64,000 nt of DNA, taken from contig OZ199840.1 of the NCBI GenBank assembly GCA_964304625.1, forward strand, positions 903,284 to 967,283, given 5' to 3'. Shown here piece after piece: positions 9,819-43,577 of the stretch. Numbering within the stretch: the first letter of the stretch is position 1; every line of letters begins with the position of its first letter. The notes beneath the pieces are model-generated. The model ran no database searches and was not told the origin of the DNA. It saw only the letters and a list, made by a program, of their open reading frames with translations. The translations under genes were made by a program, and so were the position numbers. Origin of the DNA: Kudoa neothunni. Lineage: Eukaryota > Animalia > Cnidaria.

Positions 9819-12759
9819 CTAATTTCTATTCTTCCAGTAACCAAAATAGAATCCTGCTCCAATAACAACAAGAGCTATTGGAACTACAGTAGCAATAATT
9901 CTATATATCAAAGTTAAACAAAACATATCTACTTATTATACATTGTATTTGTTGATCTAAACAAATTTAAAACTAATATTTACACATCGAAGTTACGTAG
10001 ATTTATTGGAGGTTTCACCTATTATTTAATTTAAAAAGTTGATATAAGTGGTCTTATTTTACCTTTATTAATTTTTTCAAGCCCAAATACATTACTTTGG
10101 TCACTATGGAATACTTCCAACTGATAATTACTTGTGTCTTCAACATCAGAAATGGAGAATCCCCTGCAAGGAGGAAACACATCGCAACCCTCACCAACTA
10201 CCATGCATTTCTTAACTATTTGGTTGGATGGGTCGTCCAAATTTATTAATTTCCATTTACACAAAGAAGTTTGATCCACATCTTTCGGTAAAGTCGTTTT
10301 CACATTTATAGTTGTATCTTCACGGGTAATTACAATTGTTATTTTTTTCGTGGGGTTCACATGTGGTGTAGCTGATGGATCTAAAATTAAATATTAATTA
10401 TTGAATTTAAATATAATATAATAAATTTTACTTTTGGGTATGTGTATTGTAGTTTCGGTCGATCTTCCAACAGCTGTCACTAAAACTCTGTACTCTTTGT
10501 CTGCTTCGTATACTTCACTAAATATGATACTACTACATGAGGGTGGTACTTCACAAGATGGGGTTGTAAGCTTATTAGTCGGCGTGACGTTTGTTGATGG
10601 TTGACCCGTTGATCTAGCAACTCCAGATTGTGAGAGAGTTGATTTCATATCAGATTTGGCAGTATTTCCTGTCGATTGTGGTGCTGGACATTCATACAAC
10701 ATATCATATGTTTCCCCATTCTTTACTTTTACTTTGTAATGGCATACAGCTTCGGCATAAGGTGAAGACAACGTGCCTACTATTTTAAAACCTTTTTCCA
10801 AAAATTGATTTTCTAGTTTGAGAGTTGACATTCCTTAACAATCATAATTTAAAGTTAGGTGAAACATGGGAAATTTAGTACTCGTCCTTATTTGAAAGAC
10901 TTTAGAACCGTGCTCTTTGTGTGCAACAACCTTTAGATCGTATTCTGTTCCCGGAATAAGTCCCACAATATGTTGAGTGTCTCTACAGAATCCTCTGCAT
11001 GGATAACTATCCGCACACATTGCACAAACGTATACATCCTTTCCACGGGGGCTGAGATAGTAAGCACATGTGATATCTGTATTCGCAGCAACTGTGCTAA
11101 CATCGAGAGCTTTAATGGAAAGATGGGTATCCCCCAAGGTTGTTGTTGCACCGGGGAAAATATTTTCAGCTGTTGCATCTATATATTATATTATATAAAT
11201 ATCATTTGATAATTAATATACTTGTTCTGAAGAATATATGCTCTTTAAAATCAGCGGGGACACCATGGTTACCACCTGCTGAAGCTGCTTTAATTTCAAG
11301 AGTATAAGGTTTTCCACTGACAAGTGAGGATATTTTTAGCGCTGAACCACAATCAGTGTTACATCCGTCACTGGCATTTTCACAAATAGCCTTTGTACCA
11401 TCCGTATCAGCCAACGATGGTTCATCGGCAGCATAATAACTTACAGTACACGAAGAAAATTGTGGGGTACCAGTTGGTTTGAATAAGCGTGTATCTAGTG
11501 TAACACCTGAGGCAGTGTACGACGATAATAATTCGGCGGGAGTTTCATCAGTAAGTTTTTCTGTAATAACTAAATAAATATTATTTGAAATATTTAACTT
11601 TCTTATAAACCAAATTTTTTTTTGTATGTATCCAAAGTATGTAGTTCCAATTTTTCCAATTTGGAAATGTCTAGTTTGTATCAATATTTCGACAACTGCT
11701 TTCGATGCATCGAAAATAAGTTCTACATTATTACATGGTGCATAGCAATCTTTATCTTCATTTTCACCACATTTGGATGTATAATCTTTTGTATCTCCAG
11801 TTTGAATTTGAGTGGATACGTCCTTTATACCAAATCGACAGATTTCAAACGGAAATTTATTTGTAAACTTAAGTAAATATTTAGTCTTCAGGTCATCATT
11901 ATTATATTTCACATAATATTGCGGAATGTAAACGTCAGTGTTCATCAAAGTATAATTATTTTGCAGTTTATAAAAGAATGATGGATAACCCACGCATTTC
12001 ATTTCATAATGTGGGATCATCAAATCAAAATCTACTTCATTATTATTATCATTTCCTGTAACACAATCGGCTGCAGCGGTTCCGTCAGCGTATTTTACAC
12101 CCTTATAGGAAATGGGGCATGCAACATTTGCACAAGTTATTGTTTTCAATTTCAGTTTACGTTGACTCGTTGATATTGTCACTTGTGGGTTTACTAGCAA
12201 ACCTATAAAAATATATAGATAATTTTTTAATATTCATCTAATTACGAATTTCTAGCCCAAAAATTGTTTTAGCTTTTGTTTGTTGAGAAGCAGTTTGAGC
12301 CCCATTCGCCACAAAAACTTTGATATATTTTGTCCTTGGGGAAAATTTATCATACGCAAGTGAATTAGTGCTTCCTGTGCAAACAATAACGCATTTATCA
12401 TTAACTAGTGCATTCCCATTTTTCAGGACACTGATTAATATCTTGATAAGTAACCTCAAACTCATTGAATTTTTTAATGTAACAATGGTTCGACTCGGAA
12501 AATTCACCTCCACTTAATGCAAAATGAACTTTCATTTTGTTATCATGTTGCACGATTTTTGTATGTGAGGGATTCTGTTTCAGCGGTTGGAGTTTCAGGT
12601 TGTCGTTGTTGTTGCTGTTGTTGATTAATTTGAGGTTGAGTTTGAGCTCCTTCTTGTGGAGTAGATTTCGCTATATTCGATTTAAATATTTACTAAATAG
12701 TAGGTATAGTTACAAATAATTGTAATAATTATTCCTAATAAAAAGAGGAACCCTTTCAT
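9819..12759 (-). CDS. Array copy 1: Cys-rich FN3-like multi-module type I membrane protein (10 exons); apparent +1 homopolymer frameshifts
   Basis: Exon-by-exon homology to intact copy 3 with conserved GT-AG sites. Signal MKGFLFLLGIIITII; TM IIATVVPIALVVIGAGFYFGYW followed by KNRN*. Extra A in runs near 12557 and 12421. Confidence 0.8.
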
Positions 12760-13492
12760 TTTGATTTAAATTATCAAAAACGGATATTAACGTTTGATTC
12801 ATAAAGAACAATACAATGAATGCATAGAAATTTAATAATACTCTCGTATCTATTATTAATATAATTTTACCAAATTGTTTATCCTAGGATTACATTTGCT
12901 ATTTATGTTAAATAAATATCGTTTATCAAAAATTATTAACAAAAATAAAAGAATTTATCTATGTTAATATAAAAGTCGCTTCAAAAATAATATTAATTTA
13001 AAAAATGATAAACGAATTAATTTGAATCAATCAAAAATCTATTTAAAATATTAAATAAATATTTTTATTTTCAATAAGTCCTCTAACCTATTAAAAAAAA
13101 TTCATAACATAGATTTTAATAATTTCTTTATAATTCAAACGGATTATTAATTTCAATTTAATTGTTGTCTATATGTTTCAACTCGTCAACCCAGTTTATA
13201 ACGATTTTTATGTCTATTCATATTGTTTCAGCGACTTCATTACTTTCCCTAATTGATGTTGTTATCTTACTTTTTCTCATAATATTTATTTATAAATTTT
13301 TTACTTATATTCCCTACGAAAATTCAAAATATAATTTTATTATTAAATTAGATAAAATATCTTCGCTATATCTCAAATTTATTTTTTAATTTTATTAAAT
13401 ACAATTTTTAATAACAACAAAATTAATATAGATTTTAAAATTAATTTATAAAAATTTAACATTTGCAGAGCATTTTCAAATTATTGGATTAA
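12760..13492 (-). promoter_or_regulatory. Conserved 5' flank of the array genes (putative 5'UTR/promoter); homologous to 19428-19720, 34410-34600 and 43578-44287
   Basis: The first ~125 nt upstream of the ATG read identically in copies 1 and 2 and nearly so in copy 4. Homology with the copy-4 flank ends at a TTAA (13489-13492 vs 44284-44287). Confidence 0.6.
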
Positions 13493-13719
13493 CCTCCTAA
13501 GTAAATGAAAAATTTACACCTTCCAAATAAAATGTGATATAAATTTACCTCATTTTTTTATCTTATAAAATTGTCCCAAATAAAATTACACATTGAATAA
13601 TAAAATATGAGGAGAATTCATTGTGAAAAGTTTGAATAAATGACCAATTATTAAAGTTATATTCTATATGTGTGTGCGCACGCATCAACGTTGTTACGCT
13701 TCGTTGAGGGATGGTTGTA

Positions 13720-15689
13720 GGAATTGGCTATTTACATGGATCCATTTAATACCCCCTCGGGATTGGCTATATGCTTGGATGGGAATATCTCCTAGAATAT
13801 GTGAGATATTAAAAATTTGATATAACGTTTACAATAGACTATATTTTCCCTAAAAAATTTTATAAAATTTTTCGAATGATTTTAAATGGAGAATTAATTC
13901 ATTAAAACCATACTTTGATCGTCTTTCATGTACCAGAATTGAACTTTTCTTGGGTTAATAACAGTATTCAAAGGGTTATTTACGATATTCAGTACAATTA
14001 ATTCAAATTATTCACCCAATCGTATATTACGAACTCGATTAAGGCGTGTGTACGAGACAATTTTTCACATTTAATTCCGGTGGCTAAAAATATTAGAAAA
14101 AAATGAGGTTGCCAATATACCCCTTATTTTTTTTAATGAAACGATCTTTTTACCGGTTGGTTGTTAATATCTTTTGAATGTTTAATTCTATGCTCTTTGG
14201 TTTGAAAACAATCTTAACAATTTGTTAAAATACTAACTTTATTAAATTTCATTGAGTAACATATTTTTTAAACATAAAATAAATCAATATTTTATTTGCA
14301 AAAAATTTTATTCAATTCTTGATAATTTTTTCGGAAACCTAATAATAGACGCCCTTCTCATTTTCCTCCTAATAATTGTTATTTTGTATACTTCCTCCAT
14401 AATAATATTAGATCAGTAAAGTGCCAGGAGAGTATAAATTGATGGAAAGTTTCGTTGTTACTTAGAGTATCATATGACTGTAAATATGTGGTAACCATTA
14501 CACGTTTTCTTTCAATTCTGATGGATTTCAGGTAACAGAATAACGATATGAAGAATTCTTGCAGAGTTGAAAATTTTTCGACAACATTTTCGATCTCTCA
14601 TTTGTCGATTCCAATCTATTATTTGTGAAATTTTTAAAATAATTTTCAGCATTACTTAGTAAACGATCCATTCACTAACGATAGATTTCTACCTTTAATC
14701 CAAATAAATATCGAAATTGTAAATTCCATACCCATATAATTATTGACATATGCGAACAACTTGATCGTTGCTAATACATAAACTGTTACATCTAAATTAT
14801 TCATAATATATCTCCATTTTTCTGAATTTATTCCATATTTTCCTATTTAATTTTCGCGTTTGAATATTTGACAGAAATGAAACTTACATATCAAAAGGGA
14901 GTAGATTCAAACGTCATCTTAAGGCACTTTCTGAGGCATTGTTATTTATCTGTTCTTATCTGCTCTTATTGTTCATATTTTTGTTTTTAGCCAAGGGGAA
15001 ACATCGACTAATTATTTTAATAGCCATTTGATCGAATCTTCAGATTCATCATACGATACATGCACTTGTTATCAGTCATGCTAAACGAATCTTGTAATGT
15101 TGTTATGAATAAAGATGCGCTAGACATAAATATAGATGCATCTAGCATATTTAATTTAAATGAAACGTGAGTTAAATAGTACAGTTTTCAAAAAGGGTAT
15201 TCGCGGAGATTCACATTTTGAAATTCCCCGCATAGACTCAACGTAACCAAATAGTTTAGCTTATAAAATTATTTTGCATAATAAGGAAATCTATGAATTT
15301 TACGATACAACTTAGATCAAACGAGAATTAATGCTCAATGTAAGACAATTATTAAAATTGTGAGATAATGCGAGGCATGCAGCCAATGCTCAGTTTGCAC
15401 AACGTCTAACTTGACGATAATCAATTTTATTGCAGGCAATACAACTTAATTCGTTAATATATTGTGTAGAAGAAATTAATAATGTTACCAAATCAAGAAA
15501 AGTACGATTATGGTACATAAAATATGGTTAAAATATGGTTTTAATGGGAAAATTCTCCATTTAAAATTATTAAAAACAATTTATAAAATTCGATAGGAAA
15601 AAATATAGCAAATTGTAAATTTGAAATAAAATTTTTAATATCTCACATATTCTAGGAGATATTCCCCATCCATGCAAATAGCCATTTCC
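13720..15689 (-). mobile_element. Mutator-like element (ZSWIM3-type MULE) with long TIRs, degenerate
   Basis: Imperfect TIRs of ~200 bp beginning GGAA(T/A)TGGCTATTT.CATGGAT, with a shared block GGAATATCTCCTAGAATATGTGAGATATTAAAAA. Minus-strand remnants FTNNRLESTNE...STLQEFF...SIRIER, ADKN and ICKFH. No TSD found. Confidence 0.75.
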
Positions 15690-16451: not shown

Positions 16452-19427
16452 CTAATTTCTATTCTTCCAGTAACCAAAATAGAATCCTGCTCCAATAACA
16501 ACAAGAGCTATTGGAACTACAGTAGCAATAATTCTAAATATCAAAGTTAAACAAAACATATCTACTTATTATACATTGTATTGGTTTGATCTAAACAAAT
16601 TTAAAACTAATATTTACACATCGAAGTTACGTAGATTTGTTGGAGGTTTCACCTATTATTTAATTTAAAAATTGATATAAGTAATCTTATTTTACCTTTA
16701 TTAATTTTTTCACTTCCAAATACATTACTTTGGACACTATGGAATACTTCCAACTGATAATTACTTGTGTCTTCAACATCAGAAATGGAGAATCCCCTGC
16801 AAGGAGGAAACACATCACAACCTTCACCGACTATCATGCATTTCTTAACTATTTGGTTGGATGGGTCGTCCAAATTTATTAATTTCCATTTACACAAAGA
16901 ATTTTGGTCTACATCATTCGGTAAAGTCGTTTTCACATTTATAGTTGTATCTTCACGGGTAATAACAATTGTTATTTTCTTTGTGGGGTCCACACGTGGT
17001 GTAGCTGATGGATCTGAAATTAAATATAATTTTTAATTATAGTTTTATTAATATTTAATTAAATTTTTGAGGTTAATATATAATAAATTTTACTTTTGGG
17101 TATGTCTATTGTAGTTTCGGAAGATCTTCCAACAGCTGTCACTAAAACTCTGTACTCTTTGTCTGCTTCGTATCCTTCAGTAAATATGATACTACTACAG
17201 GAAGGTGGTCCTTCACAAGATGGGATTGTAAGTTTATTAGTTGGTATTACTTTTTTTGATGGTTGACCTCTAGATCTAGACACCATAGGTTGTGAGAGAG
17301 TTGATTTCATATCAGATTCGGCAGTATTTCCTGTCGATTGTGGTGCTGGGCATTCATACAACATATCATATGTTTCCCCATTCTTTACTTTTACTTTGTA
17401 GTGGCATACAGCTTCGGCATAAGGTGAAGATAATGTGCCTACTACTTTAAAACCTTTTTCCAAAAATTGATTTTTTAGTGTGAGAGTTGACATTTCTTAA
17501 CAATCATAATTTAAAGTTAAATATTCGATGAAGTTTTATACCTGTCTTTATTTGATAAACTTTAGAACCGTAATCCTTGTGTGCTACAACCTTGAGATCG
17601 TAATCTGTTCCAGGAGTCAATCCCACAATATTTTGAGTGTCTCTACAGAATCCTCTGCATGGATAACTATCCACACACATTGCACACACGTATACATTCT
17701 TTCCGCGGGGGCTGAGGTAGTAAGCACATGTTATATCTGATATGCCAACCGCCGTGTTAACTTCGAGAGCTTTAATGGAAAGATGGGTATCCTTTATAGT
17801 TGTCTTTGCATCGGAGAATACATTTCCGGCGGTTGCATCTATATATTATGTTATATATAGACATTATTCTATTTTCAATAAACTCGTTCTGAAGAATATA
17901 TGTTCTTTAAAATTTTCTGGAACAACATGGCTACCAGCTGCTGAAGCTGATTTAATTACGAGAATATAAGGTTTCCCACCGGAAAGTTTAGATACAGCTA
18001 ACGCCGAAATACAGCCCGTGTCACAGTTGTTTGTGCCTTCTCCACAATTAGCCCCTGTACCTTCCCCACCAACCAAAGAAGGTTTATCGGCAGCATAATA
18101 ACTTACAGTACACGAAGAAAATTGTGGGGTAGTAGATGGTTTGAATAAGCGTGTATCTAGTGTAACACCGGAGGATGTGTACGCTGATAGTAATTCATCA
18201 TAAGTACCATCATTCTTTTTATCGTTAATAACTAAATACATATTATTTGATATATAAATATAAATTTTTTAAAAAACCGAATTTCTTTTGTATATATCCG
18301 AAATATGTAGCTTCACTTTTTTTATTTGAAAATGTCTGGTTTGTACCAATATTTCGACAACTGCTTTTGATGCTTCGAAATTAAGTTCCACATTATCACA
18401 TGGTGCGTAGCATTCTTTATCTGTGCCCCCACCACAATTTTGATGTGTAATCTTTTGTATCTCCAGATTGAATTTGAGTGGATACGTCCTTTATACCAAA
18501 TCGACAGATTTCAAACGGAAATTTATTAGTGAACTTAAGTAAATATTTCTTTTTCCCGTCATGATTATACTTCACATAATATTGTGGTATGTAAACGTCA
18601 GTGTTCATCAAGGTATAATTATTTTGAAGTTTATAAAAGAATGATGGATAACCCATGCATTTCATTTCATAATGCGGAATCAACAAATCAAATTCTACTT
18701 CACTATCATTTGCTGCGACACAACTAGTTCCGGCGGTTCCTGCAACGTATTTTACATCCTTATAGAAAATTGGGCAGTCAACATTTTTACAAGTTTTTGT
18801 GCTCAATTTCAATTTACGTTGACTCGTTATCGTCACTTGTGGGTTTACTAGCAAACCTATAAAAATATATATAAATGTGATATTCACATTATTTACGTAT
18901 GTCTAGCCCAAAAATTTTTGGGTTTGTAGTTTTTTGAGAAGCAGCTTCAGCCCCTTGGGTTGCAAAAATTTCAATATATTTTGTCCTTGGGGAGAATTTA
19001 TCATATGTGAGTTTATTATCAATTTTTTGTGCAGGTAATGACACATTTGTTGCCGCCATATGTACTGTCAGTTCCAGGGCACTCATTAATTTCTTGATAA
19101 GTATTTCCAGCGTCATTGGATTTTTTAATATAGCAATGATTCGAAGCAGTAAAACTACCACCACCCAATATTAAATGAACTTTCATATGGCCGCCATCCT
19201 TCACAATCTTATATGTAAGGGATTCTGGTTCACCTGGCTGAGCTTGACCTTGGTTTTGTGGTTGTGGTTGTTGTTGTTGCTGCTGCTGCTGTTGCAGTTG
19301 AATTGTAGTATGTGCTGCATCTTGGAGATTAATTTTCGCTACATCAGATCGGGTTATTTGTTCATTAATAAAAATAGTTACCAATATCTGAAAAAATAAT
19401 TCCTAATAAATAGAGAAATCCTTTCAT
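16452..19427 (-). CDS. Array copy 2: Cys-rich FN3-like type I membrane protein with poly-Q linker; apparent +1 homopolymer frameshifts
   Basis: Same 10-exon layout. MKGFLYLLGIIFSDI|AKINLQDAAHTTIQLQQQQQQQQQPQP; TM/tail exon encodes the same peptide. Frameshifts near 19025, 18437 and in the 15-nt microexon. Confidence 0.8.
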
Positions 19428-19937: not shown

Positions 19938-20993
19938 CAGTAGGGAACCGATTTTTCCGTAATCCCCTTGGGACCACGGAAAAGTTACTGATAATATGTC
20001 AGTGACGTATTCAGTGTGCGCGCGCAGCTAAATAAAAAAATTTACTTTTTTAAAAGAAATTAATCCCATTTATACGATCGTCTACCGATACTGAAACAAT
20101 ATATTAATTTATGTTATTTTAAATTTTATTTTTAAATGTGCATATCAATTTTATGATGTTAACTCATTATTTCATCAAGATAAGTAATCTTCTCTGTCGT
20201 CTATTTCTCCCGCATGTTTAAATATTTAAATGAATCTTTTGATGATATAAATTCTACCACTTGTTCATCTTCAGTTTCAAAATTAGCAGATTCAACAATT
20301 AAAGGAGTTAGCTCGTCAAAGTGTTTTGATGTAAGCACAATGACTTTCTCTTGAATAATCTCGGTATTTCCAGCTGAGAACACTTTATTGAAAAAATTAA
20401 TATTTGATGAACGTTCGAATTTATCAGCTGTAGGAACCTCACATTTTCTAAAATAATTAAACACAACTTCCTTCGAAACACCGTCCAGGATTTTTTAATT
20501 AGGAACAATGTTTAAAGCGAATCATTGGAGGATGTATTTATATTACTGCTAACTGTAGCAATATGGCTTTTTATTAAATTATCTTTCTAATTTTATTTTA
20601 ATGAGAAAATGATTCCATGATCTTATGGTTGCAAAACGCTAGTTGATTTTTTTGTAAGGAATATATGAGAGATATTGGATAAATGAATTTATGCGTGACA
20701 AGTGGCATTATTAAGAAGTAGAAAAACTTTCTTGTACTTCATTTTGAATACATTGTCAACGTTAGAAAGATATTTATTAAATGTTTCCCTAATCATCCAT
20801 TCTTGTCTGTTTTGATTTGTATTTTACTAGAAATGTTTTAAAATTTTTTAAAACAACGTGTTTTTATGATTTCTAATCGCAAGAGATTCATTGCAACCTC
20901 TAGGCATAGATGCAAACCGCAAGGCAGTAACCATTTTTAGATTTTTATCTCTTGACAAAACAGCATTTAAAATAATGGACCATTTTGTTTCTA
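19938..20993 (-). mobile_element. Older Tigger/pogo element, truncated by a younger copy of the same family
   Basis: TA|CAGTAGGGAACCGATTTTTCCGTAATCCCC at 19938. 20082-20993 is homologous to 1-913. Confidence 0.8.
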
Positions 20994-22870
20994 CAGTAGG
21001 TAACCGATTTTCCGTAATCCCCTTGGGACCGATGAAAAGTTACTGAAAACACGTCAGTGACGTATTTTCCGTAATTTTGTGCGTGTGCGTGGAATAAAAA
21101 TTATAAGTATTTTAAGAAACTTTATATCATACCGTACATACTCACGTATTTTTATTGAAGAGATATGTTATTTTATTTGGAGTTTTATTTTTATATATGT
21201 ACTCTTCGTAATTTTGTGATCTATATTAATTAATTCCTCTAGACAATCAATTCAATTCCTCTCTCTTTTGTGTATTTTTTTAGCGTGTTTAAACATTTAA
21301 ATATATCTTTTGATGATATATATTCCACCACATCCTCATCTTCAGTTTCAGTATCACTACCATTTGAATTAGAAGATTCAACAATCGAAGGAGAAGGTTC
21401 GTCAAAGCTTTTTGATGTAGGCATGATGGTTTCCTCTTGGATCATTTCAGAAATTTCAGCTGAATGCTCACACTCATCAGCCACAGGAAACCCAGATTTT
21501 TTGAAGCAATTAAATACGGTATCCTTTGTAACATTATTCCACGATTTTTCAATTAAAAACATGGATTGAAGTAAATCTGGCGGAGATGGATTTATACCTC
21601 TGCGAGCTGCAACAATATGGCTTTCTATCAAATTATTTTTGTAGTTTGATTTAAATGAAAAAATTATGCCCTGGTCTAAAGGTTGCAAAACGCTAGTTGA
21701 ATTCTTTGGGAGGAATATAAGTGAGATATTCGACAGTTGAATTTCCGGGTAGCAAGTTTGCATTATCGAGAAAAAGCAAAACTTTTTTGTTCTTCGTTTT
21801 AAACGAATTACTCAAATTAACAAGATATTTCTTAAATATCTCTCCCGTCATCCAAGCCCTCTTATTTGACTCATATTTTACTGGAAATGTTTTAACATTC
21901 TTAAAACAACGGGGGTTTTTGTAGTGTCCTATAACAAGAAGTTCAATGCGATCTCCAGGCATAAAAGCACAAAGCAAAACGGTGATTCTTTTTTTTAGAC
22001 TTTTTTTATCGGTTGGAATTTGTCTCTAGTGACGAAACATAGCTTTTTCCTTAAAAATATTAATACATAGGCATTTAAAGTGATATACCTCTCTGTTGCT
22101 GGTAAAACAGCGCAGTTTCGTCTAGATTGTAGATTGAGTCAACGTCATAACCTTTGACTAAGTTATTCAATTTTCTATAACACTTGATTCAACATAAGCA
22201 GCATCGCCATGGAAAGTAATATTTCTTAAATTAAATCGTGATTTAAAACCACGAAACCAACCATGGGTCACCGCAACGTTTATGTTAAATTCTTGTGCCA
22301 ATTGGTTCCTTTTATGTATGATATCGTGAGCAGATAATTCAAGTTTTTTGATCTCAAGGAATTCACCCAGTCATACACTAAATTATCGATATCGTTGTTT
22401 GAACCTTGCTTAAGATTTTTTCTCTTAGAAGAGGCTAAACCCGTTTCATACGATAAAACTATATCTTCCTTCTTGCTCAAGATGCTGTCAAGAGTAGAAA
22501 TGGAGGGAAGCTTAAATTTACTAACAGTAGTAGTTTTGGCACCTCTGTTAGGTAAACTTTCGAAGAACTTAATAATTTCATATTTTTCTTTGATAGTTTT
22601 TCTATTTTTAAGTTTACCAGGCATTATAGAAGTAAAAAACACGCGATGGGAAATTCGCTTATAGTCGAAAAGTTACGGAAAATCGGTTAAGTGCAAAAAA
22701 TAGGCAAAAAAACGGTTTTCCAATGTTCAATTTTTTTTATTTTTACAGATTATTCTTAAAAAATACAAATAAAATCAAATATATGGTTGAAAATATTTAA
22801 ATAATATTTTAAATGAAGAAATTCCGAAGTTACCGAAAATCGGTTACTATGGAGAACCGGTTACCTACTG
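20994..22870 (-). mobile_element. Tigger/pogo DNA transposon, near full length; transposase (ATG 22624 to ~21239) is frameshifted
   Basis: TA flanks. Perfect 13-bp TIR CAGTAGGTAACCG plus subterminal repeats. HTH region TIKEKYEII...ISTLDSIL; DDE_1 motifs IGHYKNPRCFKN, SNKRAWMTGEIF, VLLFLDNA and FLPKNSTSVLQPLDQGII. Confidence 0.93.
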
Positions 22871-24813: not shown

Positions 24814-27639
24814 CCCCCGAATACCTGGAGTGGACCGCGTTGGTCCACGAGATATAAAATTTTTAATATCTTTATACATACATTTTTATAAACTTTTTAT
24901 GCTGAAAGTATGCTTTATTATATTTTAAAATAATTGACCTGTAAGTTATGAACATTTTTGTAAAAATAAGTAAACAAAAAAAGTTACGTAAATACCGGAG
25001 ATGGACCATTTCGATCCACGTGTAATTGTTAACGAAATTAATATTTTGTATTATAATTACATCATTCTAAATTTAATATTATATTTCATAAGCAATATAA
25101 AATATTCTAAAACAATTTATGGTTAATCATTTGTTTGATCAAAAATTTTAATTGAATTTAGTTTATGACCAGCTCGCACGCTCAATAAGGAATTTGCTTA
25201 AAAAATGAATTCTGACAAAGAACATATTTTTTTGAAAGCGGGTAAGAAAGTGCTGACGATACAATATACGTTAAAAGGGGCTCGATGGATTTGGATGAAA
25301 TAATTAACGATCCAGTCAACAATGACAACGATGATGATGCATACGATAGCGATGCGGACATTGAAGATATGACCCATATCCCATTTGTTTTCTCCAAAGA
25401 TGGAGACAAATGGCACAAGACCCCGAATAAAGTTGAATGGAGATCTACTACAGAAAATATTTATAATGTAAAAGCGGCATTTACAAAAAAAGCTTTCTAG
25501 AATGGCCAAACTCCCATGAAAGCCTTTAATAATTTTATGACCTATAAAATGCTGGAAGAGATCCAATATTGTACCAACAAATTTATTGAACAATAAAAAA
25601 CCAATGTCAACAAGATAAATATGACTGAGTTAAAATTTTTTTTGGAGCTTTCCTATTAATTGGCGTAATGAAAGGTAAAAATGAAAACATCCGAGAATTT
25701 TTGACTGTAAAATAAGACTTTCAATTACTGATTGCAAAAATCGCAAGAGAATGCCTTGAAGATTTTTTAGCTTGTCTCAGATTCGACAAAGGAAGTACCA
25801 GGGATAGAGAGGATAAACTTTCCCCATCAGATATATAAATACGATGAGTTTATAAAGACGTGTAAAGAAAGTTACAACTCATCTCCCCAATTAACTGTGG
25901 ATGAACAGCTTGTCACATTTAGAGGTCGTTTCCCATTCAAAATGTTCATTCCTTCTAAGCCTGGCAAGTATGGGATAAAAATTTGGACATTGTGTGATGC
26001 AACAATCACACATCTATTCAATCCAAAGATATACATTAGCAGGGAGAACGGCGTTCTTGAAACCAGCCAAGATGAAAATGTGGTAAACGATTTAATTACA
26101 CCTTGTTTAAAAAAAATTCGTAACGTTACCATAAACAATTTTTTCCACATCGTCACTTTAGAAATATTCAATATCTCAGAAAACAACAATTGTGGAAACC
26201 TCCGTAAAAATAAAAGATTTCTCATCCCTAAATTTCAGCCATCAAAGGGAATAACAAACGATGTGAAATTTTTATTTCAGAATAAATTTACTGTTGGGGC
26301 TGACAGTTAGTCTTCGGCGTCAAAAATATAATGACACACATTATCTTGGTCGGTACCTATGTGTATTAATATACAGTTGGCGCTAACTATATAAACACCC
26401 TTATATTAGCCTCTATATTATTATTGTTATATTTGACCGATGATTCCTTGCCCTAACATTTACCTTGGTAAAATACAATCTCAAGAATAATAAATCCGTG
26501 GTATTTTTTAGTTCCACACATCGAGGTTGAAATATTGATTCGGGTTCAAAATAACCAGAGGTCATGAATTATTACAACCAAACTAAAGGAGGGTGGATAT
26601 GCTTGACCAAATTGTCCGCTGTTATTCCACAAAAAGAGCCACTCGTTGTTGGCTGATAGCAATTTTCTTTAACATAATCGATATAGCCGCCTATAATGCC
26701 TATCTTTTGTATTTTTATCGAAATATGAAATTCAAGAATAATCATAAGAAACAAACCCAATGAAAGTTTTTAAAAATGTTAGCGGCAGAGTTGCTGGGAA
26801 ACGATGATAAAAATTTTAAAACCAACCCAATAAAAAGGAACCTCCGTTTGGAAGAGGTGAATGCTATATTTGCCCAACTAACATGAAAAAAAGCAGGAGA
26901 ATTTGTTCAAGTTGAAACAAATTAACCTGCAAAAATCACAGAATTGAAAACATAGAATGCGATGTATGTGACAACAAATAAAATATATTGAATTATTTAT
27001 CTACTTTATTTCATCATATTTTTATCCGAAATTAAGTTTTTTTTATTAAATTTGATTATATCCGCAAAATATATCATATTTGTGTATTTTACCTATTTAG
27101 ATTATAGACAAAACAAGTAGAATCAATGTCATTATAATGAGATTGTATAGATAGTTTAAACATGTGTACCAGTTTCATATTGTAAAATATTAAATTATTT
27201 TTTATTTTTCAAGCTTAATTATCGCTTTTACTCATAAACAAAAAAAATTGTTTATTATAATTGTTTTGTGCCAATAAATCATAAAACACCATCTAAATTA
27301 AACCGCTAATTACAATCATAAAATAACAATTTTGAAAATGATACGATTATTCTAAATATAGAAATTCTATGAACTAACTTTATTTTGTTTCAATATTACG
27401 ATATCGATTTTATATAGGTTGATATTTGCAAATTATTTTTGTATGCGCGCACCTAAAAAATTTTATTTTAATGTTTTAATTCAAATGTTTTTTTTTAACT
27501 TAAACCAAGCTATTTAATTTTCTTATTTATCTTTATAGTTAAATAGTTTAAATTATAATTATGCTATGATTAAATTTCATAGGACCATAGCGGTCCTCTT
27601 CAGGCATTCGTGTAACTTTTTTTTTGCAGGTTTTCGAGG
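24814..27639 (+). mobile_element. piggyBac DNA transposon (duplicate of 3426-6055), inactivated
   Basis: TTAA flanks, same TIR and catalytic motifs, and the same premature stop after FTKKAF. Carries a nested solo LTR. Confidence 0.92.
26292..26458. mobile_element. Solo LTR (167 bp) nested in the piggyBac transposase
   Basis: TGTTGGGGC...GCCCTAACA ends (TG..CA, short inverted repeat). 5-bp TSD TTTAC. Empty site present in copy A (~4892). Confidence 0.8.
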
Positions 27640-29190: not shown

Positions 29191-29255
29191 TAATTGCATA
29201 TGATTAAATAAATATATTCATAATTAAAAATATGTCTATTTTTCTGCTATATAAT

Positions 29256-31283
29256 TAGGGTTTGCAATTTTTGATTAAAATCGATTTCCATTGATTTAAA
29301 CCGTTGAATTTGAAAAAACGTGCAAGTTTTATATTTTTTTGATTGATAAAAGCTAATTTTGTTTAATTGAAACCCTTGAAAATGAGAAGAAAACGTCGAG
29401 AGTCGACTGATTATTTAATTGATTGGAACGACTTGGAAGTTGCGGGAGACATGTTCTCATACAAATATTGCGAGCTAGTCTTACCCCTTTAAATAAAACA
29501 AAATACAAACACACGTTATATCGTAAAAACACGCGACTATGAAGATTAATGTGAAAAACACTATCCCCAACAAAGATATTTTGAACCGTGATAGATCCAA
29601 CTCAAGCGAAATTGAAATGGACCTAATAAAGATTGTATTATTTGATGGTCTTCCATTCCAGGCTATCAATAAAGATAGTTCATTAAGGAATTTTCGTTTT
29701 AAATACTGCCCAGCTTTACGATCATTACCCGATGGAAGAGTTCTTATCGATAAACATATTTCCCCGATATTTTTGAGGAGTATGCAAGCGATTAAACTAG
29801 CAATGGTAGATGTTCGATACAGTTTGATAATTGACGAGTTGCCTGACTTTAATAATATACATGTTTTCAACACGTTGGCTAGTTATTACGATCACCAATA
29901 AAATAAAAGAATAATATTTATGTATGATTCACCCAGAATTTTAAATTGCAATTCTGTTATTGTTGCTAATCAATTATCAAACATGCTGAAACGCTACGAC
30001 TTGGTATGGGATAACGGTTTCGTTATTACTTCGGAATCAGCGTTATACATGAAAAAATTCATTAATAATTTGAAAGCAATGTGTTCACATATTGTTCGAA
30101 TTCCATGCTTTTCTCATATTATCTATCTTGTTGTCCGAAAAGCTACAGACGAATATTTCTTGGATATTAAAAAATTCTGCACAAAGTTTTCATCTATTCT
30201 GTCCAATTATAATACAAAGAGAACATTCCTGATTCATCTCAAGAACAACAATTTGGAAGATGTCAAAGAAATTCTTCGTGTCATGGAAATCCGTTGGTAT
30301 AATTTTTACAATTGCTTAAAGCGAATAAAATAATATTACCCAGCTGTTGTCGATTTTCTAAATGAAATTAAACCTTTAGAATTCTGAAAACGTCTAAATG
30401 AAATTCTACTAATTAATTCTGAGAATATCAATGTCTTATTTCTCTCGGTCACTGTGTTAATTGATGAACTTACGCCGCTGGTTGAATTTTCGAAACGTAT
30501 TGAAACTAACGATAATTTTTGTTTTCCATGTATGTTCGACTGGATGAATAATAATTTTGGAATGAATAATAATTTTCTGAATGATCACAAAGATAATCTT
30601 GGACTTCTTCCATTTAAAATTAGAACAAATCTTATCAATAAAATTGAATCATTTCGCTGGAGCATCATCGAAGAAATCCACGATTTAATATCAAATAGTA
30701 TTAATGATTGCTTTCCATCAGCCACTTTCTCTAAAACAATCGAAAACATTGATCCAACAACGCCCTTATCAACTGACAATGGACATATTGATTATCTTTG
30801 TTATTTAATAGAGGCTAAAGACGAAGTTATCCATAATGATGAATACAATTTCTTCTGTAAGGCACGTAATAATTTAAGTTATCCCTTTATCACTACAGAC
30901 TTCTCGAAGGAAAAATCCAATATTTTCCTATTGCTGTGAAAACTTTCGTTGGATTTGTTGGCAATAAACACTTCATCTATCACCGTAGAACGAAGCTTTT
31001 CGAAACTAAATTATATATTTCGAAAAAAAATTATGAAACTCTCAAATGAACGCGTTTCAATGGTTTTGATGCTTCATTTTAACGGTCCATCTCTATTTTA
31101 ACAAGAGGTTACTCAACATAATTATTTTTACTTTAAAAAACTTTGTTTGTTTAGTCCCCCAAAAATCCAGATTTTTCTTTTATTCTTAAAATATACGTGA
31201 ACAAAGCCGATTTCGAGAAGAAAAATTTGATTGATAAAATCCGTCGAATAAAAAAAAATAAACGTCGAAATTTGTAAACCCTG
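29256..31283 (+). mobile_element. hAT DNA transposon (duplicate of 7673-9700), inactivated
   Basis: TSD TATATAAT at 29248-29255 and 31284-31291. Same TIRs. Motif TSSITVERSFSKL. Confidence 0.92.
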
Positions 31284-31401: not shown

Positions 31402-34400
31402 CTAATTTCTATTCTTCCAGTAACCAAAATAGAATCCTGCTCCAATAACAACAAGAGCTATTGGAACTACAGTAGCAATAATTCTAAATATCAAAGTTAA
31501 ACAAGACATATCTACTTATTATACATTGTATTGGTTGATCTAAACAAATTTAAAACTAATATTTACACATCGAAGTTACGTAGATTTATTGGAGGTTTCA
31601 CCTATTATTTAATTTAAAAAGTTGATATAAGTGGTCTTATTTTACCTTTATTAATTTTTTCAAGCCCAAATACATTACTTTGGACACTATGGAATACTTC
31701 CAACTGATAATTACTTGTGTCTTCAACATCAGAAATGGAGAATCCCCTGCAAGGAGGAAACACATCGCAACCCTCACCAACTATCATGCATTGCTTAACT
31801 ATTTGGTTGGATGGGTCGTCCAAATTTATTAATTTCCATTTACACAAAGAAGTTTGATCCACATCTTTCGGTAAAGTCGTTTTCACATTTATGGTTGTAT
31901 CTTCACGGGTAATTACAATTGTTATTTTTTTCGTGGGGTTCACATGTGGTGTAGCTGATGGATCTGAAATTAAATATTAATTATTTAATTAAAATATAAT
32001 TTTTAATTATAGTTTTATTAATATTTAATTAAATTTTTGAGGTTAATGTATAATAAATTTTACTTTTGGGTATGTCTATTGTAGTTTCAGTAGATCTTCC
32101 AACAGCTGTCACTAAAACTCTGTACTCTTTGTCTGCTTCGTATACTTCACTAAATATGATACTACTACATGAGGGTGGTACTTCACAAGATGGGGTTGTA
32201 AGCTTATTAATCGGCGGCGTTACTTTTTTTGATGGTTGACCTGTTGATCTAGACACCATAGGTTGTGAGAGAGTTGATTTCATATCAGATTCGGCAGTAT
32301 TTCCTGTCGATTGTGGTGCTGGGCATTCATACAACATATCATATGTTTCCCCATTCTTTACTTTTACTTTGTAGTGGCATACAGCTTCGGCATAAGGTGA
32401 AGATAATGTGCCTACTACTTTAAAACCTTTTTCCAAAAATTGATTTTTTAGTGTGAGAGTTGACATTTCTTAACAATCATAATTTAAAGTTAAATATTCG
32501 ATGAAGTTTTATACCTGTCTTTATTTGATAAACTTTAGAACCGTAATCTTTGTGTGCTACAACCTTGAGATCGTAATCTGTTCCAGGAGTCAATCCCACA
32601 ATATTTTGAGTGTCTCTACAGAATCCTCTGCATGGATAACTATCCACACACATTGCACACACGTATACATTCTTTCCGCGGGGGCTGAGGTAGTAAGCAC
32701 ATGTTATATCTGATATGCCAACCGCCGTGTTAACTTCGAGAGCTTTAATGGAAAGATGGGTATCCCCTATGGTTGTCGTTGCATCGGGGAAAACATTTCC
32801 GGCTGTTGCATCTATATATTATGTTATATATAGACATTATTCTATTTTCAATAAACTCGTTCTGAAGAAAATGTGCTCTTTAAAATTAGCCTTAACACCA
32901 TGTCCATCATCTGCGTCCGCTTTAATTTCAAGAGTATAAGGTTTTCCACTGGCCAGTTGGGATACTGTTAATGTTGAAGTACACTGAGTGTCACAGTTGG
33001 TACTACCATTTCCACATTTCGCTTCTGTACCATCCACATTTTTCAAAGAGGGTTTATCCGCAGCATAATAACCTACAGTACATGAAGAGAATTTCGGAGA
33101 ATCGGTTGGATTAAATAAGCTTGCATTCAGCGTCACGCCCGTAGCTGTGTAAGCCGATAATAGTTTAGCATACGTACTATCTTCCTTTTTATCATCAATA
33201 ACTATATAAATCTTATTTGAAATATTTAACTTTCTTATAAACCAAATTTTTTTTGTATGTATCCAAAGTATGTAGTTTCACTTTTTTTTATTTGAAAATG
33301 TCTGGTTTGTATTAATATTTCGACAACTGCTTTTGACGTTTCGAAAGTGAGCTCCACATTATCACATGGTGCGTAGCAATCTTTATCTTTACCACCACAA
33401 TTCGATGTGTAATCTTTAGTTTCTCCAGATTGAATTATAGTGGATTCTTCCTTTATACCAAATCGACAGATTTCAAACGGAAATTTATTAGTAAACTTAA
33501 GTAGATATTTATTTTTCTCGTTATGATTATACTTCACATAATATTGTGGTATGTAAACGTCGGTATTCATCAAAGTATAATTATTTTGAAGTTTATAATA
33601 GAATGATGGATAACCCACGCATTTCATTTCATAATGTGGGATCATCAAATCAAAATCTACTTCATTATTATCGTTACTTGTAACACAATTAGCTCCGGCG
33701 GTTCCTGCAACGTATTGTACATCCTTATAGAAAATGGGGCAATCAACTTTCTTACAAGTTGTCGTACTCAACTTCAATTTACTTCCACTTGTTGTTATTG
33801 TAACTTGTGGGTTTATCAACAAATCTATAAATATATAGATATGTAATATACACATTAATTACGTATGTCTAGTCCAAAAATAGTTCCTCCTTTAGTTAGT
33901 TGAGAAGCAGTTTGAGCCAGATTCACCGTAAAAACTCCAATATATTTTGTTCTTGGGGATAATTTATCATAGGTGATTTTATTATCATTTTTTGTACAGG
34001 TAATGACGCACTTACCATTGACAATTGCGTTGCCAGTTCCAGGGCACTGATTAACATCTTGATAAGTAACCCCATTGTCATTGGATTTTTGGATATAGCA
34101 ATAGTTCGACTCGATAAAGTCACCGCCGCTCAATACTAAATGAACCTTCATACTGCGCTCATCTTCCACAATTTTATATGAGAGGGATTTTGGCGCAGCC
34201 GGCAGAAGTTGAAGTTGTTGTTGAGTTTGAGCTTTAGCTTGACCTTGAGCTTCAGTATGAGGTATTGTTTGTAGCTCAGTTTGAGTTTCAGACACTAATG
34301 AATCTTGTAAAGTTTTTTTTGCTATAATTGATTGAAATATACATTCAGTAATAGAAATGTTACAAATAAGTGTGAATATTATCCCTAATAAAAAGACAAA

Positions 34401-34409
34401 CCCCTTCAT
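31402..34409 (-). CDS. Array copy 3: intact 856-aa Cys-rich FN3-like multi-module type I membrane protein
   Basis: Exons 34409-34364, 34321-33863, 33824-33243, 33201-32857, 32811-32515, 32468-32064, 31963-31646, 31601-31580, 31539-31525, 31483-31402. All introns are GT-AG (38-46 nt, one of 100 nt). The total is 2571 nt with no internal stop. Signal peptide at the N-terminus; TM plus KNRN at the C-terminus. Confidence 0.88.
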
Positions 34410-39559: not shown

Positions 39560-40300
39560 TCACATTAAAGATGGACTGATTTAGATGTCATGTTTAAAAA
39601 TTATGTACGTACCTATAAATTCACTTAATTCGAACTTTCAAAACATCAATAATTTCATATATCCACATTTTTCCCACAAAAAATAACAATCAATATAATT
39701 CCTTATGTTGTCTTTTGTAAACGATTTATGTTCTTCTCGCTCATTTCTCATGCATTGATTGTGAAATACATATATAAAATCTAACATCTCATTGTCAAGT
39801 AAGTTTAAGAGAGCCAAAACTAGAGTGTGGCAATTTTTAATGTGTTATTTGTGCCGACGGTGTTATATTTGAAAATACTTTCCTTCAGTTTGTCTTCGAG
39901 TGCATTTTGGTTCCTCAGGCAATTTTTCTCCATCCTTTGATACCATCGTGTGAATATTTTCCATGCGATGATCAATTTTATTATCGAAATCATAATACTC
40001 CGACATAAGGTTTTCAATTGTACAGTCACTAATTTAGGAATCAAATTATTCAAAACGGTAATCGTATTCAGTGAATTCACAATCCATTGAACAACGTTTA
40101 TCACTAAAATGGACAGCATTATCTACATATTTTTATCCGTTAATTTAAACAGTTTACAAATTGTCTATAATAATGAAATTTTTTTTACTATATCTATAAT
40201 CCATGTATACAATAAACAATGAGTTATTCCAAAAAAACAAGAGACAATGATCATGTAAATTTTTTTTGGTCGGTCCTGCGTGAATTAACGGTACTAATAT
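39560..40300 (-). mobile_element. Ancient piggyBac fossil, diverged homolog of 6850-7600
   Basis: Alignable by eye to 6840-7600. Translates as MVSKDGEKLPEEPKCTRRQTE. Confidence 0.5.
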
Positions 40301-40574
40301 CAAGAATTTTTAAAGATGCACATTTATTAAATAAAAAACAAACATTTTTATATATGAAATTTTGAAAGTTATGTTTCTAAAAACTTTAGCATTTAGTAGC
40401 AATAAAGAAAGGTATACATTCTTAATTAAAAAATATATCTAATAATCTTCCTGCAAACAATCAATCGATAATAATTAAAATTTAATAGTATGAATATGAA
40501 TATAATATGTTTTAATTAAATAAATATCAAAGTAACGTGTTATATTTTTAATAATCCTCATCATCGAAATGAAT

Positions 40575-43500
40575 CTAATTTCTATTCTTCCAGTAACCAA
40601 AATAGAATCCTGCTCCAATAACAACAAGAGCTATTGGAACTACAGTAGCAATAATTCTAAAAATCAAAATTAAACAAGACACTACTACTTATTATACATT
40701 GTATTGGTTGATCTAAATAAATTTAAAACTAATATTTACACATCGAAGTTACGTAGATTTGTTGAGGTTTCACCTATTATTTAATTTAAAAAGTTGATAT
40801 ATGTGGTCTTATTTTACCTTTATTAATTTTTTCAAGCCCAAATACATTACTTTGGACACTATGGTATACTACCAACTGATAATTACTCGTGTCTTCAACA
40901 TCGGAAATAACGAATTCCCTACAGGGAGGAAATACATCACAACCTTCACCGACTATCATGCATTTCTTAACTATTTGGTTGGATGGGTCGTCCAAATTTA
41001 TTAATTTCCATTTACACAAAGAATTTGGTCTACATCATTCGGTAAAGTCGTTTTCACATTTATAGTTGTATCTTCACGGGTAATTACAATTGTTATTTTT
41101 TTCGTGGGGTTCACATGTGGTGTAGCCGATGGATCTGAAATTAAATATTAATTATTGAATTTAAATATAATTTTTAATCATAGTTTTATTAATATTTAAT
41201 TAAATTTTGAGGTTAATAATATAATAAATTTTACTTTTGGGTATGTGTATTGTAGTTTCAGTAGATCTTCCAACAGCTGTCACTAAAACTCTGTACTCTT
41301 TGTCTGCTTCGTATCCTTCAGTAAATATGATACTACTACAGGAAGGTGGTCCTTCACAAGATGGGATTGTAAGTTTATTAGTTGGTATTACTTTTTTTGA
41401 TGGTTGACCTCTAGATCTAGACACCATAGGTTGTGAGAGAGCTGGTTTGAGATCAGATTCGGCAGTATTTCCTGTCGATTGTGGTGCTGGGCATTCATAC
41501 AACATATCATATGTTCCCCCATTCTTTACTTTTACTTTGTAATGACATACAGCTTCGGCATAAGGTGAAGATAATGTGCCTACTACTTTAAAACCTTTTT
41601 CCAAAAATTGATTTTCTAATTTGAGAGTTGACATTTCTTAACAATTATAATTTAAAGTTAAATCAAAATGGGAAATTTAGTACTCGTCCTTATTTGATGG
41701 ACTTTAGAACCGTGCTCTTTGTGCGCAACAACCTTGAGATCGTAATCTGTTCCAGGAGCCAATCCCACAATATTTTGAGTGTCTCTACAGAATCCTCTGC
41801 ATGGATAACTATCCACACACATTGCACAAACATATACATCCTGTCCGCGAGGACTGAGGTAGTAAGCACATGTGATATCTGTATTCGCAGCATCTGTGTC
41901 AACTTCGAGAGCTTTAATGGAAAGATGGGTATCCCCCAAGGTTGTTGTTGCACCGGGGAAAATATTTTCAGCGGTTGCATCTATATATTATATATTTATT
42001 ATTGGATTTTTAAAATACTTGTTCTGAAGAATATATGCTCTTTAAAATTGTTTGGAACACCATTAGTAGCTGCGTTTGCAGGTGCTTTTATTACAATGAT
42101 ATATGGTTTTCCATTGTCAAGTGAGGATATTGTTAACGCTGAACCACAATCAGTGTTACATCCGCCACTGCCACCTCCACAGTTAGCCCTTGTACCTTCC
42201 GCATCAGCCAAAGAAGGTTCATCTGCAGAATAAATACTTACATTACATGAAGAGAATTTGGTGGTAGTAGATGGTTTGAATAAGCGTGTATCTAGTGTAA
42301 CACCCGTGGCTAAGTATGCCGATAGTAGTTTAGTGGGATTTCCCTCTGCATTTTTTTCATCAATAACCCTATATAAATCTTATTTGAAATATTTAACTTT
42401 CTTATAAACCAAATTTTTTTTGTATGTATCCAAAATATGTAGTTTCACTTTTTTCTATTTGAAAATGTCTGGTTTGTATCAGTATTTCGACAACTGCTTT
42501 TGACGTTTCAAATATAAGCTCCACATTATCACATGGTGCGTAGCAACCTTTATCTTCGCCTCCACCACAATTTGATTTATACTCACTAGAAGCACCACCT
42601 TGAATGGTAGTAGATTCTTGTCTTATACCAAATCGGCAGATTTCAAATGGAAATTTATTAGTGAACTTAAGTAAGTATTTATTTTTCTCGTTATGATTAT
42701 ACTTCACATAATATTGTGGTATGTAAACGTCGGTATTCATCAAAGTATAATTATTTTGAAGTTTATAATAGAATGATGGATATCCCACGCATTTCATTTT
42801 CATAATGTGGGATCATCAAATCAAATTCTACTTCATTATTATTAACACTTCCTGTAACACAATTAGCTCCGGCGGTTCCTGCAACGTATTGTACATCCTT
42901 ATAGAAAATGGGGCAATCAACTTTCTTACATGTTGTCGTACTCAACTTCAATTTACTTTCATTTGTTGATATTTTCACTTGTGGATTTACCAACAAACCT
43001 ATAAACTTATATAGAAAAATTTTTTAATTCACCTAATTACGAATTTCTAGCGCAAAAATTGTTTTAGCTTTTGTTTGTTCAGAAGCAACTTGAGCATTAT
43101 TTCCCATTAAAATTTCAACATATTTTGTCCTTGGGGAGAATTTATCGTATGTGAGTTTATTATCAATTTTTGTGCAGGTAATGACGCATTTTCCACTAAC
43201 CGGCGAATTGCCAGTTTCGGAGCATTGATCAATTTCTACATAATTTTCCCCATTGTCGTTTGACCTTTGGATATACAATAGTTGGAATCGGAAATTCACC
43301 TCCACTTAATGCTAAATGAACTTTCATTTTGTTGTCATGTTTCACAATCTTGTATGTGAGGGATTCTGGTTCAGCTTTCTTAACTTGAACATGATTTTCA
43401 GTTTGAGTTTGTTGTTGTGGCTGTTGAGGTGTAGATTGTTGCTTAGTTTGAGCTAGAATTTGGGTTGCTTCTTCTAGAGCGGTTTTCGCTATATTATATT

Positions 43501-43577
43501 GAAATATATGTTAACTATTAGAAATAATTACAAATAATTGTAATAATTATTCCTAATAAAAAGAGGAACCCTTTCAT
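40575..43577 (-). CDS. Array copy 4: Cys-rich FN3-like type I membrane protein; several apparent single-base indels
   Basis: Same 10-exon layout, signal peptide and TM/tail. Frameshifts near 43283, 42798, 41024 and in the 22-nt microexon. Confidence 0.78.

Follow-up and report, generated by a model that had tools for sequence, protein, structure and literature searches.

A 64,000-nucleotide stretch of the Kudoa neothunni genome (assembly GCA_964304625.1, contig OZ199840.1, positions 903,284 to 967,283; hereafter the window) carries, at positions 9819-43577, four tandem copies of a gene whose predicted product is a large modular membrane protein. Genome-wide comparison suggests that these copies belong to a family of at least 150 members with approximately 450 candidate loci, and fold prediction points to an ectodomain built from seven beta-sandwich modules of recognisable fibronectin type III (FN3)- or immunoglobulin (Ig)-like fold; these claims on architecture and family are held with high confidence. 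As judged from alignment of the copies, they are patchwork mosaics arising from gene conversion, and the intact paralogues are, by the same kind of evidence, under purifying selection overall. K. neothunni, a myxozoan cnidarian, parasitises tuna muscle, and we propose, giving the proposal an even chance, that the proteins of this family make up a variable surface coat or adhesin layer where the parasite meets its host.

Gene structure and predicted protein architecture

Repeat finding across the window, which is AT-rich (GC 23-35%), returned four direct repeats of ~3.2 kb, situated at 9.7-12.9, 16.3-19.6, 31.3-34.5 and 40.5-43.7 kb, and all long protein-like open segments within these four repeats were found on the minus strand. 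The limits of the array correspond to the final base of the stop codon of copy 1 (9819) and to the A of the ATG of copy 4 (43577). A preliminary description, made from the sequence of the window, had proposed four head-to-tail 10-exon paralogues, which is borne out by the repeats together with the recognisable exons in every copy. Likewise, its proposal that copy 3 splices to a protein of 856 residues holds, with GT..AG junctions throughout and a coding length of 2571 nt. The copy 3 gene (31402-34409, minus strand) consists of 10 exons of, in order, 46, 459, 582, 345, 297, 405, 318, 22, 15 and 82 nt, which join to 856 codons and a stop with no internal stop codon. The nine introns span 38-100 nt, each with a GT donor and an AG acceptor; introns 1-7 are in phase 1 and introns 8-9 in phase 2.

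The exon boundaries of copy 3 were placed on the DNA sequence, and the resulting gene model is supported by paralogue comparison. The same 10-exon model is intact in five of the seven neighbouring paralogues (L073, L074, L075, L076 and L078), in all of which the splice dinucleotides are conserved and exon lengths vary by multiples of 3 only. Five distant paralogues on other chromosomes, with 46-68% identity in exon 3, display the same module order and end in a transmembrane helix followed by KKKN, KMNKE, NKNKD, KNKG or KKKN. The two micro-exons are present in these distant genes as well, the first with 22, 28 or 19 nt and the second with 15 or 18 nt; their sequence is different, the GT/AG dinucleotides are kept and the encoded residues are rich in S, T, N and K. 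A 46-nt first exon, encoding M-K/Q and then hydrophobic residues and followed by the same GTAA donor, was found in three of the five (L021, L022 and L024), and the same rule did not locate a comparable exon 1 start in the other two (L023 and L025). No family-wide promoter motif emerged: the 5' flanks of the distant paralogues gave no convincing alignment, and a common flank is confined to the close copies.

The architecture can be followed exon by exon in copy 3, all on the minus strand. Exon 1 (34409-34364, ending in phase 1) is the signal-peptide exon, with a hydrophobic start of 15 residues and a mean Kyte-Doolittle value of 2.27. Exon 2 (34321-33863), the most divergent exon, encodes a Q/T/P-rich linker of variable length followed by the membrane-distal module 1 with its four cysteines. 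Exon 3 (33824-33243) encodes a double module of 193 residues and eight cysteines, corresponding to modules 2 and 3, and exon 4 (33201-32857) encodes module 4, the second variable module, with four. Module 5, of predicted FN3 fold, is encoded by exon 5 (32811-32515) and contains four family-wide invariant cysteines plus one subfamily cysteine. The highly conserved exons 6 (32468-32064) and 7 (31963-31646) encode the membrane-proximal modules 6, which has an S/T/P-rich insert, and 7, again with four cysteines each. The micro-exons 8 (31601-31580) and 9 (31539-31525) contribute an S/T/N stalk, and exon 10 (31483-31402) a hydrophobic helix of 22-23 residues, read as transmembrane, followed by the tail KNRN and the stop codon.

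In total, 29 cysteines are found among 847 residues of copy 3 (3.4%), grouped four per module. One four-cysteine spacing (~18-23, 6-12 and 4-6 residues) is common to exons 2, 4, 5 and 7 and the second half of exon 3; exon 6 follows it too, with the insert as an interruption, and the first half of exon 3 carries a separate set of four. Since six of the seven modules share this spacing, each is implied to contain two disulfides. In combination, hydropathy and cysteine pattern uphold the previously outlined order of signal peptide, Q-rich linker, about seven cysteine-containing modules, transmembrane helix and KNRN tail, and a tail of four residues indeed leaves no room for a signalling domain.

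All searches and fold predictions were run per exon, with structures predicted from paralogue alignments. No Pfam family reached its cut-off with any module. Weak FN3-type matches only were obtained, the best scores being 14.8 bits for fn3 (cut-off 25), 19.4 for FN3_DSCAM-DSCAML_C (39) and 18.1 for NDNF (27.3), and a weak match of exon 2 to NDNF-FN3 had an E value of 0.003. The AlphaFold2 (AF2) model of exon 5 is nevertheless a well-formed seven-strand sandwich (predicted local distance difference test score, pLDDT, 84.6), which Foldseek matched with probability 1.0 and a template-modelling score (TM-score) of 0.55-0.68 to the FN3 domains of fibronectin, monobody, Dscam, NCAM, contactin and Eph. 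The exon 5 profile likewise matched the FN3 sequences of titin (E 2e-4) and fibronectin (E 6e-3) in the PDB. A further PDB match of this profile (32516-32809), to the Plasmodium cysteine-rich small secreted protein (CSS), was too weak (E 0.0019, 21 bits) and compositionally suspect, and was left unused; CSS belongs to a parasite surface complex and is itself a sandwich protein with disulfides.

The AF2 model of exon 3 (pLDDT 81) is all beta and comprises two sandwiches, residues 1-79 forming an Ig-like sandwich of the accessory-domain type and residues 80-193 an FN3-like one, with structural Z values of 6-7.7 (6.2-6.9 for the second half against FN3 modules). The top Foldseek matches were two-domain cytokine-receptor and basigin ectodomains, at a TM-score of ~0.3 and a root-mean-square deviation (rmsd) of 11-13 Å. 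Exon 3 is devoid of Trp and hence of any WSXWS motif, and because of this and the low TM-score the modelled pair is read as a generic tandem sandwich. The exon 3 profile gave no match among PDB sequences and no usable match in the ESM Atlas. A word-based exon 3 search of proteins of 106-338 residues returned nothing, which carries little weight since full-length relatives exceed this range.

The preliminary description had called the family unrecognised. This stands insofar as exon-wise profile, word and structure searches returned no named or annotated homologue, but it does not extend to the individual modules, the predicted folds of which are recognisable FN3/Ig-like sandwiches.

Family size, divergence and gene conversion

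The K. neothunni genome was reported by Weber, Paulini and Blaxter as 40.2 Mb (scaffold N50 12.0 Mb), made up of three chromosomes and a circular mitochondrial genome, with 30.4% GC and 49-nt median introns (PMC12239612). The present search covered 40,260,978 bases, i.e. three chromosomes of 17.15, 12.04 and 11.05 Mb and a contig of 18,219 bp. With exon 5 as query, 413 first-look candidates were obtained, and the 150 matches that were scored all had E≤3e-17. With exon 3 there were 459 such candidates, and again 150 matches were scored, all at E≤3e-50; 141 of these 150 are free of stops. Family matches occur in many clusters along all three chromosomes. The genome-wide copy count suggested in the preliminary description thus comes to at least 150 scored loci and some 450 candidates, and ~450 genes of ~3 kb would occupy an estimated ~3% of the 40-Mb genome. 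The four-copy array is present as described, but it is only the downstream end of a ten-gene head-to-tail array on the minus strand of chromosome C3 (~857-947 kb), in a family of hundreds.

The exon 5 profile was also searched against 1.84 billion representative proteins. Full-length module matches came from short unnamed open reading frames (ORFs) only. Those that were traced belong to AT-rich genomic contigs from four public samples (ERZ795007, ERZ28624939, SRR31175926 and SRR33849685), and where the contigs are long enough the order of exons 4-5-6-7 is retained. Multi-FN3 proteins were matched to E 5e-40 over profile positions ~63-100 only, the searches picking up the F-strand motif L-x-P-x-T-x-Y-x-x-x-V, and every long match inspected was an ordinary multi-FN3 protein matching this motif only. 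Library matches of 800-870 residues (P0036, P0037, P0043 and others) were similarly set aside as ordinary multi-FN3 proteins, of high-GC-type composition and lacking the cysteine pattern and architecture of the family. No exon 3 relative was found among JGI metagenome contigs, and the literature library searched returned no paper connecting Kudoa or myxozoans with an FN3 family and none that gives the accessions of the four samples. The text of the genome paper contains neither 'gene family' nor 'surface' (PMC12239612), and the family possibly went unmentioned there through repeat masking or because it was missed by annotation from protein hints.

Among the four copies in the window only copy 3 is intact, and all ten exons are recognisable in each. 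Lesions were counted relative to copy 3, ignoring length differences of the Q-rich linker that keep the frame. Copy 1 (9819-12759, minus strand) has three +1 insertions in A-runs, two in exon 2 (12560 and 12423) and one at the end of exon 3 (11623), and its exons 4-10 are open. Copy 2 (16452-19427, minus strand) has four 1-nt indels (19022, 18438, 18324 and 16587), and copy 4 (40575-43577, minus strand) has five (43292, 43276, 42800, 41024 and 40765) together with an AG to GG change at the exon 4 acceptor. Since each contains frame-breaking 1-nt indels, copies 1, 2 and 4 are probably pseudogenes. Most of the lesions are located in runs of ≤5 bases or outside homopolymers, and the assembly has a quality value (QV) of 48.5 (PMC12239612); consequently, most of them are probably real. 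In the local group of 11 copies, made up of the four in the window and the seven neighbours, the frame is broken in five. Divergence among the copies reaches 27-30% in exons 2 and 4, and the DNA between them is different and contains transposon remnants. They are therefore not haplotigs or assembly duplicates, nor artefacts of one heterozygous locus, an explanation that the preliminary description had itself raised. As a separate observation on copy 1, the extra A at 11623 joins exon 3, the 41-nt intron 3 and exon 4 in one frame of 332 codons (11202-12200, minus strand), so that a transcript retaining intron 3 would keep the frame; this is possibly due to chance.

Rates of nonsynonymous (dN) and synonymous (dS) substitution were estimated by the Nei-Gojobori method for the six intact local genes. 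For exon 2, dN was 0.27 and dS 0.69 (dN/dS 0.39), and the corresponding values were 0.111 and 0.398 (0.28) for exon 3, 0.21 and 0.49 (0.42) for exon 4, 0.097 and 0.280 (0.35) for exon 5, 0.058 and 0.155 (0.37) for exon 6, and 0.058 and 0.284 (0.20) for exon 7. It is this range of 0.20-0.42, seen in every exon, on which the conclusion of overall purifying selection is based. The dS of exon 2 exceeds the divergence of both the 5' flank (0.19) and introns 1-2 (0.28-0.36). Identity between the copies in the window is 0.73 in exon 2 and 0.71-0.73 in exon 4, and reaches 0.94-0.99 in exons 6-7. The earlier picture of clustered, modular and variable ectodomains is thus sustained, with the variability residing in the distal modules and conservation in the membrane-proximal ones. 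Within exons, the ratio pN/pS in 15-codon windows approached 1 in the linker, in exon 2 codons 131-150, in exon 4 codons 51-75 and ~91 (0.9-1.1) and in a few windows of low divergence, and was 0.05-0.3 in framework strands. The loops of the distal modules would accordingly appear to be where the ratio nears 1, which is offered as a pattern, the windows carrying no statistical test.

The nearest relative of each copy switches between segments, in sharply bounded tracts of 93-100% identity. Copy 2 is the clearest case, being a mosaic of L075-like, L078-like and copy-3-like tracts. Relative to L078 its identity is 75-85%, but 93-99% in a tract of ~450 nt that starts at the end of exon 3 and takes in exon 4. 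Relative to L075 it is ≥99% from exon 6 onwards and into the 3' flank, and exons 2, 4 and 5 contain additional short patches. L078 lies ~140 kb from copy 2, which is itself a probable pseudogene, and together these two points imply that conversion acts over distance and involves broken copies.

Flanking sequence and other features of the assembly

The spacer DNA of the array contains several transposon remnants. Between copies 2 and 3, pogo/Tigger-type DNA transposon remnants extend over 20201-22642 (minus strand), in which the overlapping ORFs 21239-21763 and 21693-21977 match DDE_1 (E 3e-15 and 4e-16, respectively) and an older partial duplicate at 20484-20703 is 76% identical to 21538-21757. 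A second remnant in the same 15-kb gap is represented by an ORF at 25897-26310 (plus strand) matching the piggyBac-type DDE_Tnp_1_7 (E 6e-14). Directly downstream of copies 1 and 3 an ORF for a hAT-family C-terminal dimerisation region is found on the plus strand, at 9366-9518 and 30949-31101. The latter matched at E 1.6e-4, and its counterpart was recognised through a similar ORF of 50 residues. The 3' flanks of these two copies, which contain the hAT ORF, are 96-98% identical (9000-9299 versus 30583-30882), and from this shared flank it follows that the duplicated unit reaches beyond the gene.

The segment 50899-51354 (plus strand; PF00294, E 2e-20), downstream of the array, is an exon of a housekeeping gene for a pfkB-family (ribokinase-like) sugar kinase, and hydrophobic ORFs at 58640-63742 (minus strand) resemble exons of a multi-pass transporter.

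At the level of the assembly, (TAAACC)n was confined, among the six chromosome ends, to the right end of C2 (12039536-12040069), matching the published description of this telomere repeat at a single chromosome end (PMC12239612). The presumed mitochondrial contig C4 (1-18219) has 44% GC versus ~28% for the nuclear sequence, and its very divergent protein genes are apparently fast-evolving; the ORFs 2629-4005 and 7805-8830 are read as putative cox1 and cob. The first 10 kb of this contig gave no Rfam match and standard ARAGORN no tRNA, and ARAGORN in mitochondrial mode predicted 14 tRNAs of doubtful quality. The nuclear-receptor domain zf-C4 returned only three matches in the genome, all in one 10-kb cluster (C1, 10296485-10306767) and two with identical scores. 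Judged by these domain matches, the nuclear-receptor set of K. neothunni is extremely reduced and locally duplicated. Their presence marks the genome as animal, and a nematode origin, conceivable from three chromosomes, AT-rich sequence and short introns, was rejected: nuclear receptors are so few, a search run with no positive control found no cuticle-collagen N domain, and the published description of K. neothunni fits.

Possible roles at the parasite surface

Each gene of this very large, lineage-restricted family is predicted to encode a type-I membrane glycoprotein with a cleavable signal peptide, a low-complexity Q/T/P tip, seven sandwiches, an S/T stalk, a transmembrane segment and a basic tail of 4-5 residues. 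With a tail too short for signalling, the protein must act through its ectodomain. Diversification proceeds by tandem duplication and segmental gene conversion in tracts of 100-1300 nt, exchange being made easy by symmetric phase-1 module exons and conserved flanks, and frame-broken genes such as copies 1, 2 and 4 join in this exchange. Variation is concentrated in the membrane-distal loops (exons 2 and 4 and part of exon 3), with the proximal modules and transmembrane segment nearly constant. In the proposed coat or adhesin layer, variation of the repertoire may provide immune evasion, variable host binding or both, and the pseudogenes would serve as a sequence reservoir. A role at the host interface is favoured because of the conversion mosaicism, the loop-focused variability and the fact that the genome is that of a parasite. 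By architecture, and by analogy only, the taeniid proteins EG95, 45W and TSOL18 offer a parallel, these being surface or secreted host-exposed parasite antigens from small multigene families, in which a signal peptide and FN3 modules are combined with a hydrophobic segment at the C-terminus. They differ in having one or two FN3 modules rather than seven, and a handful of genes rather than hundreds.

Several observations weigh against this proposal. Whole-exon dN/dS is below 1 throughout, and diversifying selection is therefore unproven. The C-terminal hydrophobic segment could be a glycosylphosphatidylinositol (GPI)-anchor signal instead of a transmembrane helix. Three of the four copies in the window are frame-broken; in turn, the ~7x HiFi (high-fidelity) read coverage of the assembly (PMC12239612) means that a few of the homopolymer indels, e.g. 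that in the A9 run at 11623, could be assembly errors. Finally, the habitat poses a difficulty of its own. Kudoa plasmodia grow within muscle fibres, which makes antibody pressure on a coat non-obvious.

A more specific version of the coat proposal would be antigenic variation in the style of protozoa, in an animal, with ~450 FN3 genes and pseudogenes being recombined by segmental gene conversion and one or a few expressed per plasmodium, so that the surface would change when confronted with the adaptive immunity of the fish. On present sequence evidence we regard this as a doubtful, though not negligible, prospect. Antigenic variation has been seen in myxozoans, its molecular basis being described as unknown (10.64898/2026.02.11.705288), and very few parasite RNA reads were available in the published K. 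neothunni study (PMC12239612). The VSG of Trypanosoma brucei, the MSG of Pneumocystis and the var genes of Plasmodium are similar in comprising hundreds of arrayed paralogues with interspersed pseudogenes, mosaics, and variable distal and conserved proximal parts. However, their folds are unrelated, and the family described here is that of an animal, is known from genes alone and occurs in arrays along the chromosomes that are not strictly subtelomeric. A second comparison is with the VSPs of Giardia and Spironucleus and the 18 VSP-like genes reported in the myxozoan Sphaerospora molnari (10.64898/2026.02.11.705288), which likewise are type-I proteins with a variable ectodomain, one transmembrane segment and a short basic tail, in large families of fish or vertebrate parasites. 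Giardia-type VSPs, in contrast, have >5-10% cysteine, many CXXC motifs and a fixed tail motif, as opposed to 3.4% in FN3 modules in Kudoa, where the tails (KNRN, KKKN, KMNKE, NKNKD and KNKG) are short and basic with no fixed motif, unlike those of VSPs.

The alternative that survives best, which we consider unlikely but worth serious attention, is that the proteins serve adhesion or recognition in the parasite's own cell-cell contacts (cell-in-cell stages, sporogony) or in a fixed host-tissue tropism, their number and mosaicism having arisen by neutral duplication and conversion. In metazoans, type-I proteins with multiple FN3 domains typically act in adhesion, and NCAM, contactin, Dscam, DCC and Eph are among the fold matches. 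The likeness to such proteins (Pfam fn3, PF00041) extends to the predicted seven-strand fold and F-strand motif of exon 5, the arrangement of one module per symmetric phase-1 exon and the type-I topology. Purifying selection predominates, and Kudoa is mostly intracellular in muscle, both of which would suit such a role. Conversely, hundreds of paralogues exceed the need of any known adhesion code, in an animal with ~5,300 predicted genes (PMC12239612); the variation is focused in distal loops; and there is no cytoplasmic domain to reach the cytoskeleton. The Kudoa modules further differ from those of classical FN3 proteins in falling below the Pfam cut-off and in having four cysteines each versus none, and the family as a whole differs from multi-FN3 metazoan proteins in being free of cytoplasmic and Ig domains and in forming hundreds of arrayed paralogues.

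Allorecognition or kin discrimination, as in colonial cnidarians, could govern the fusion or competition of co-infecting plasmodia, and appears considerably less probable. The genome is cnidarian, and with their clustering, polymorphism and modular build the ectodomains recall the Hydractinia Alr complex, in which Alr1, Alr2 and Alr-like are variable single-pass proteins with beta-sandwich ectodomains. However, Alr proteins combine Ig-like domains with signalling tails and reside in one complex, whereas the family reported here has FN3 modules, a 4-residue tail and ~450 loci in many clusters over all three chromosomes, which is unlike a single histocompatibility complex. Moreover, the diversity observed is that among paralogues, with nothing showing allelic polymorphism.

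The two remaining explanations are both highly improbable. Decoy receptors for host cytokines or other ligands are suggested by the likeness of exon 3 to the two-FN3 cytokine-receptor homology module, with IL-7R alpha, the common gamma chain, TSLPR and IL-4R ectodomains as top Foldseek matches and four cysteines in the first sandwich, but a TM-score of ~0.3 with an rmsd >11 Å is expected of any tandem sandwich, structural Z stays below 8, and the Trp-free exon has neither a WSXWS motif nor a PDB sequence match. A non-functional family of decaying repeats, element-borne passenger ORFs or assembly artefacts would fit the broken frames (three of four window copies, five of 11 local ones), the transposon remnants between copies and the 45.6% repeats of the published annotation (PMC12239612), but not the dN/dS of 0.2-0.4, the splice sites and exon phases kept across paralogues down to 46% identity, the 141 of 150 stop-free exon 3 matches, copies too different for haplotigs or the presence of the family in four other public samples.

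Myxozoans cause major fishery and aquaculture losses, and Kudoa causes post-mortem softening of muscle. How myxozoans persist in immunocompetent fish is an open question, and in its sequence the family shows every hallmark of a variable surface layer. It gives concrete candidates for work on expression, localisation and serology, and the conserved modules of exons 6-7 are possible diagnostic or vaccine targets. The family further constitutes a clean example, in an animal genome, of how symmetric phase-1 exons and tiny introns permit gene conversion on the scale of modules. Should the antigenic-variation reading of the variable coat prove true, the family would represent the first description of such a system in a metazoan parasite and would supply the missing molecular basis for antigenic variation in myxozoans.

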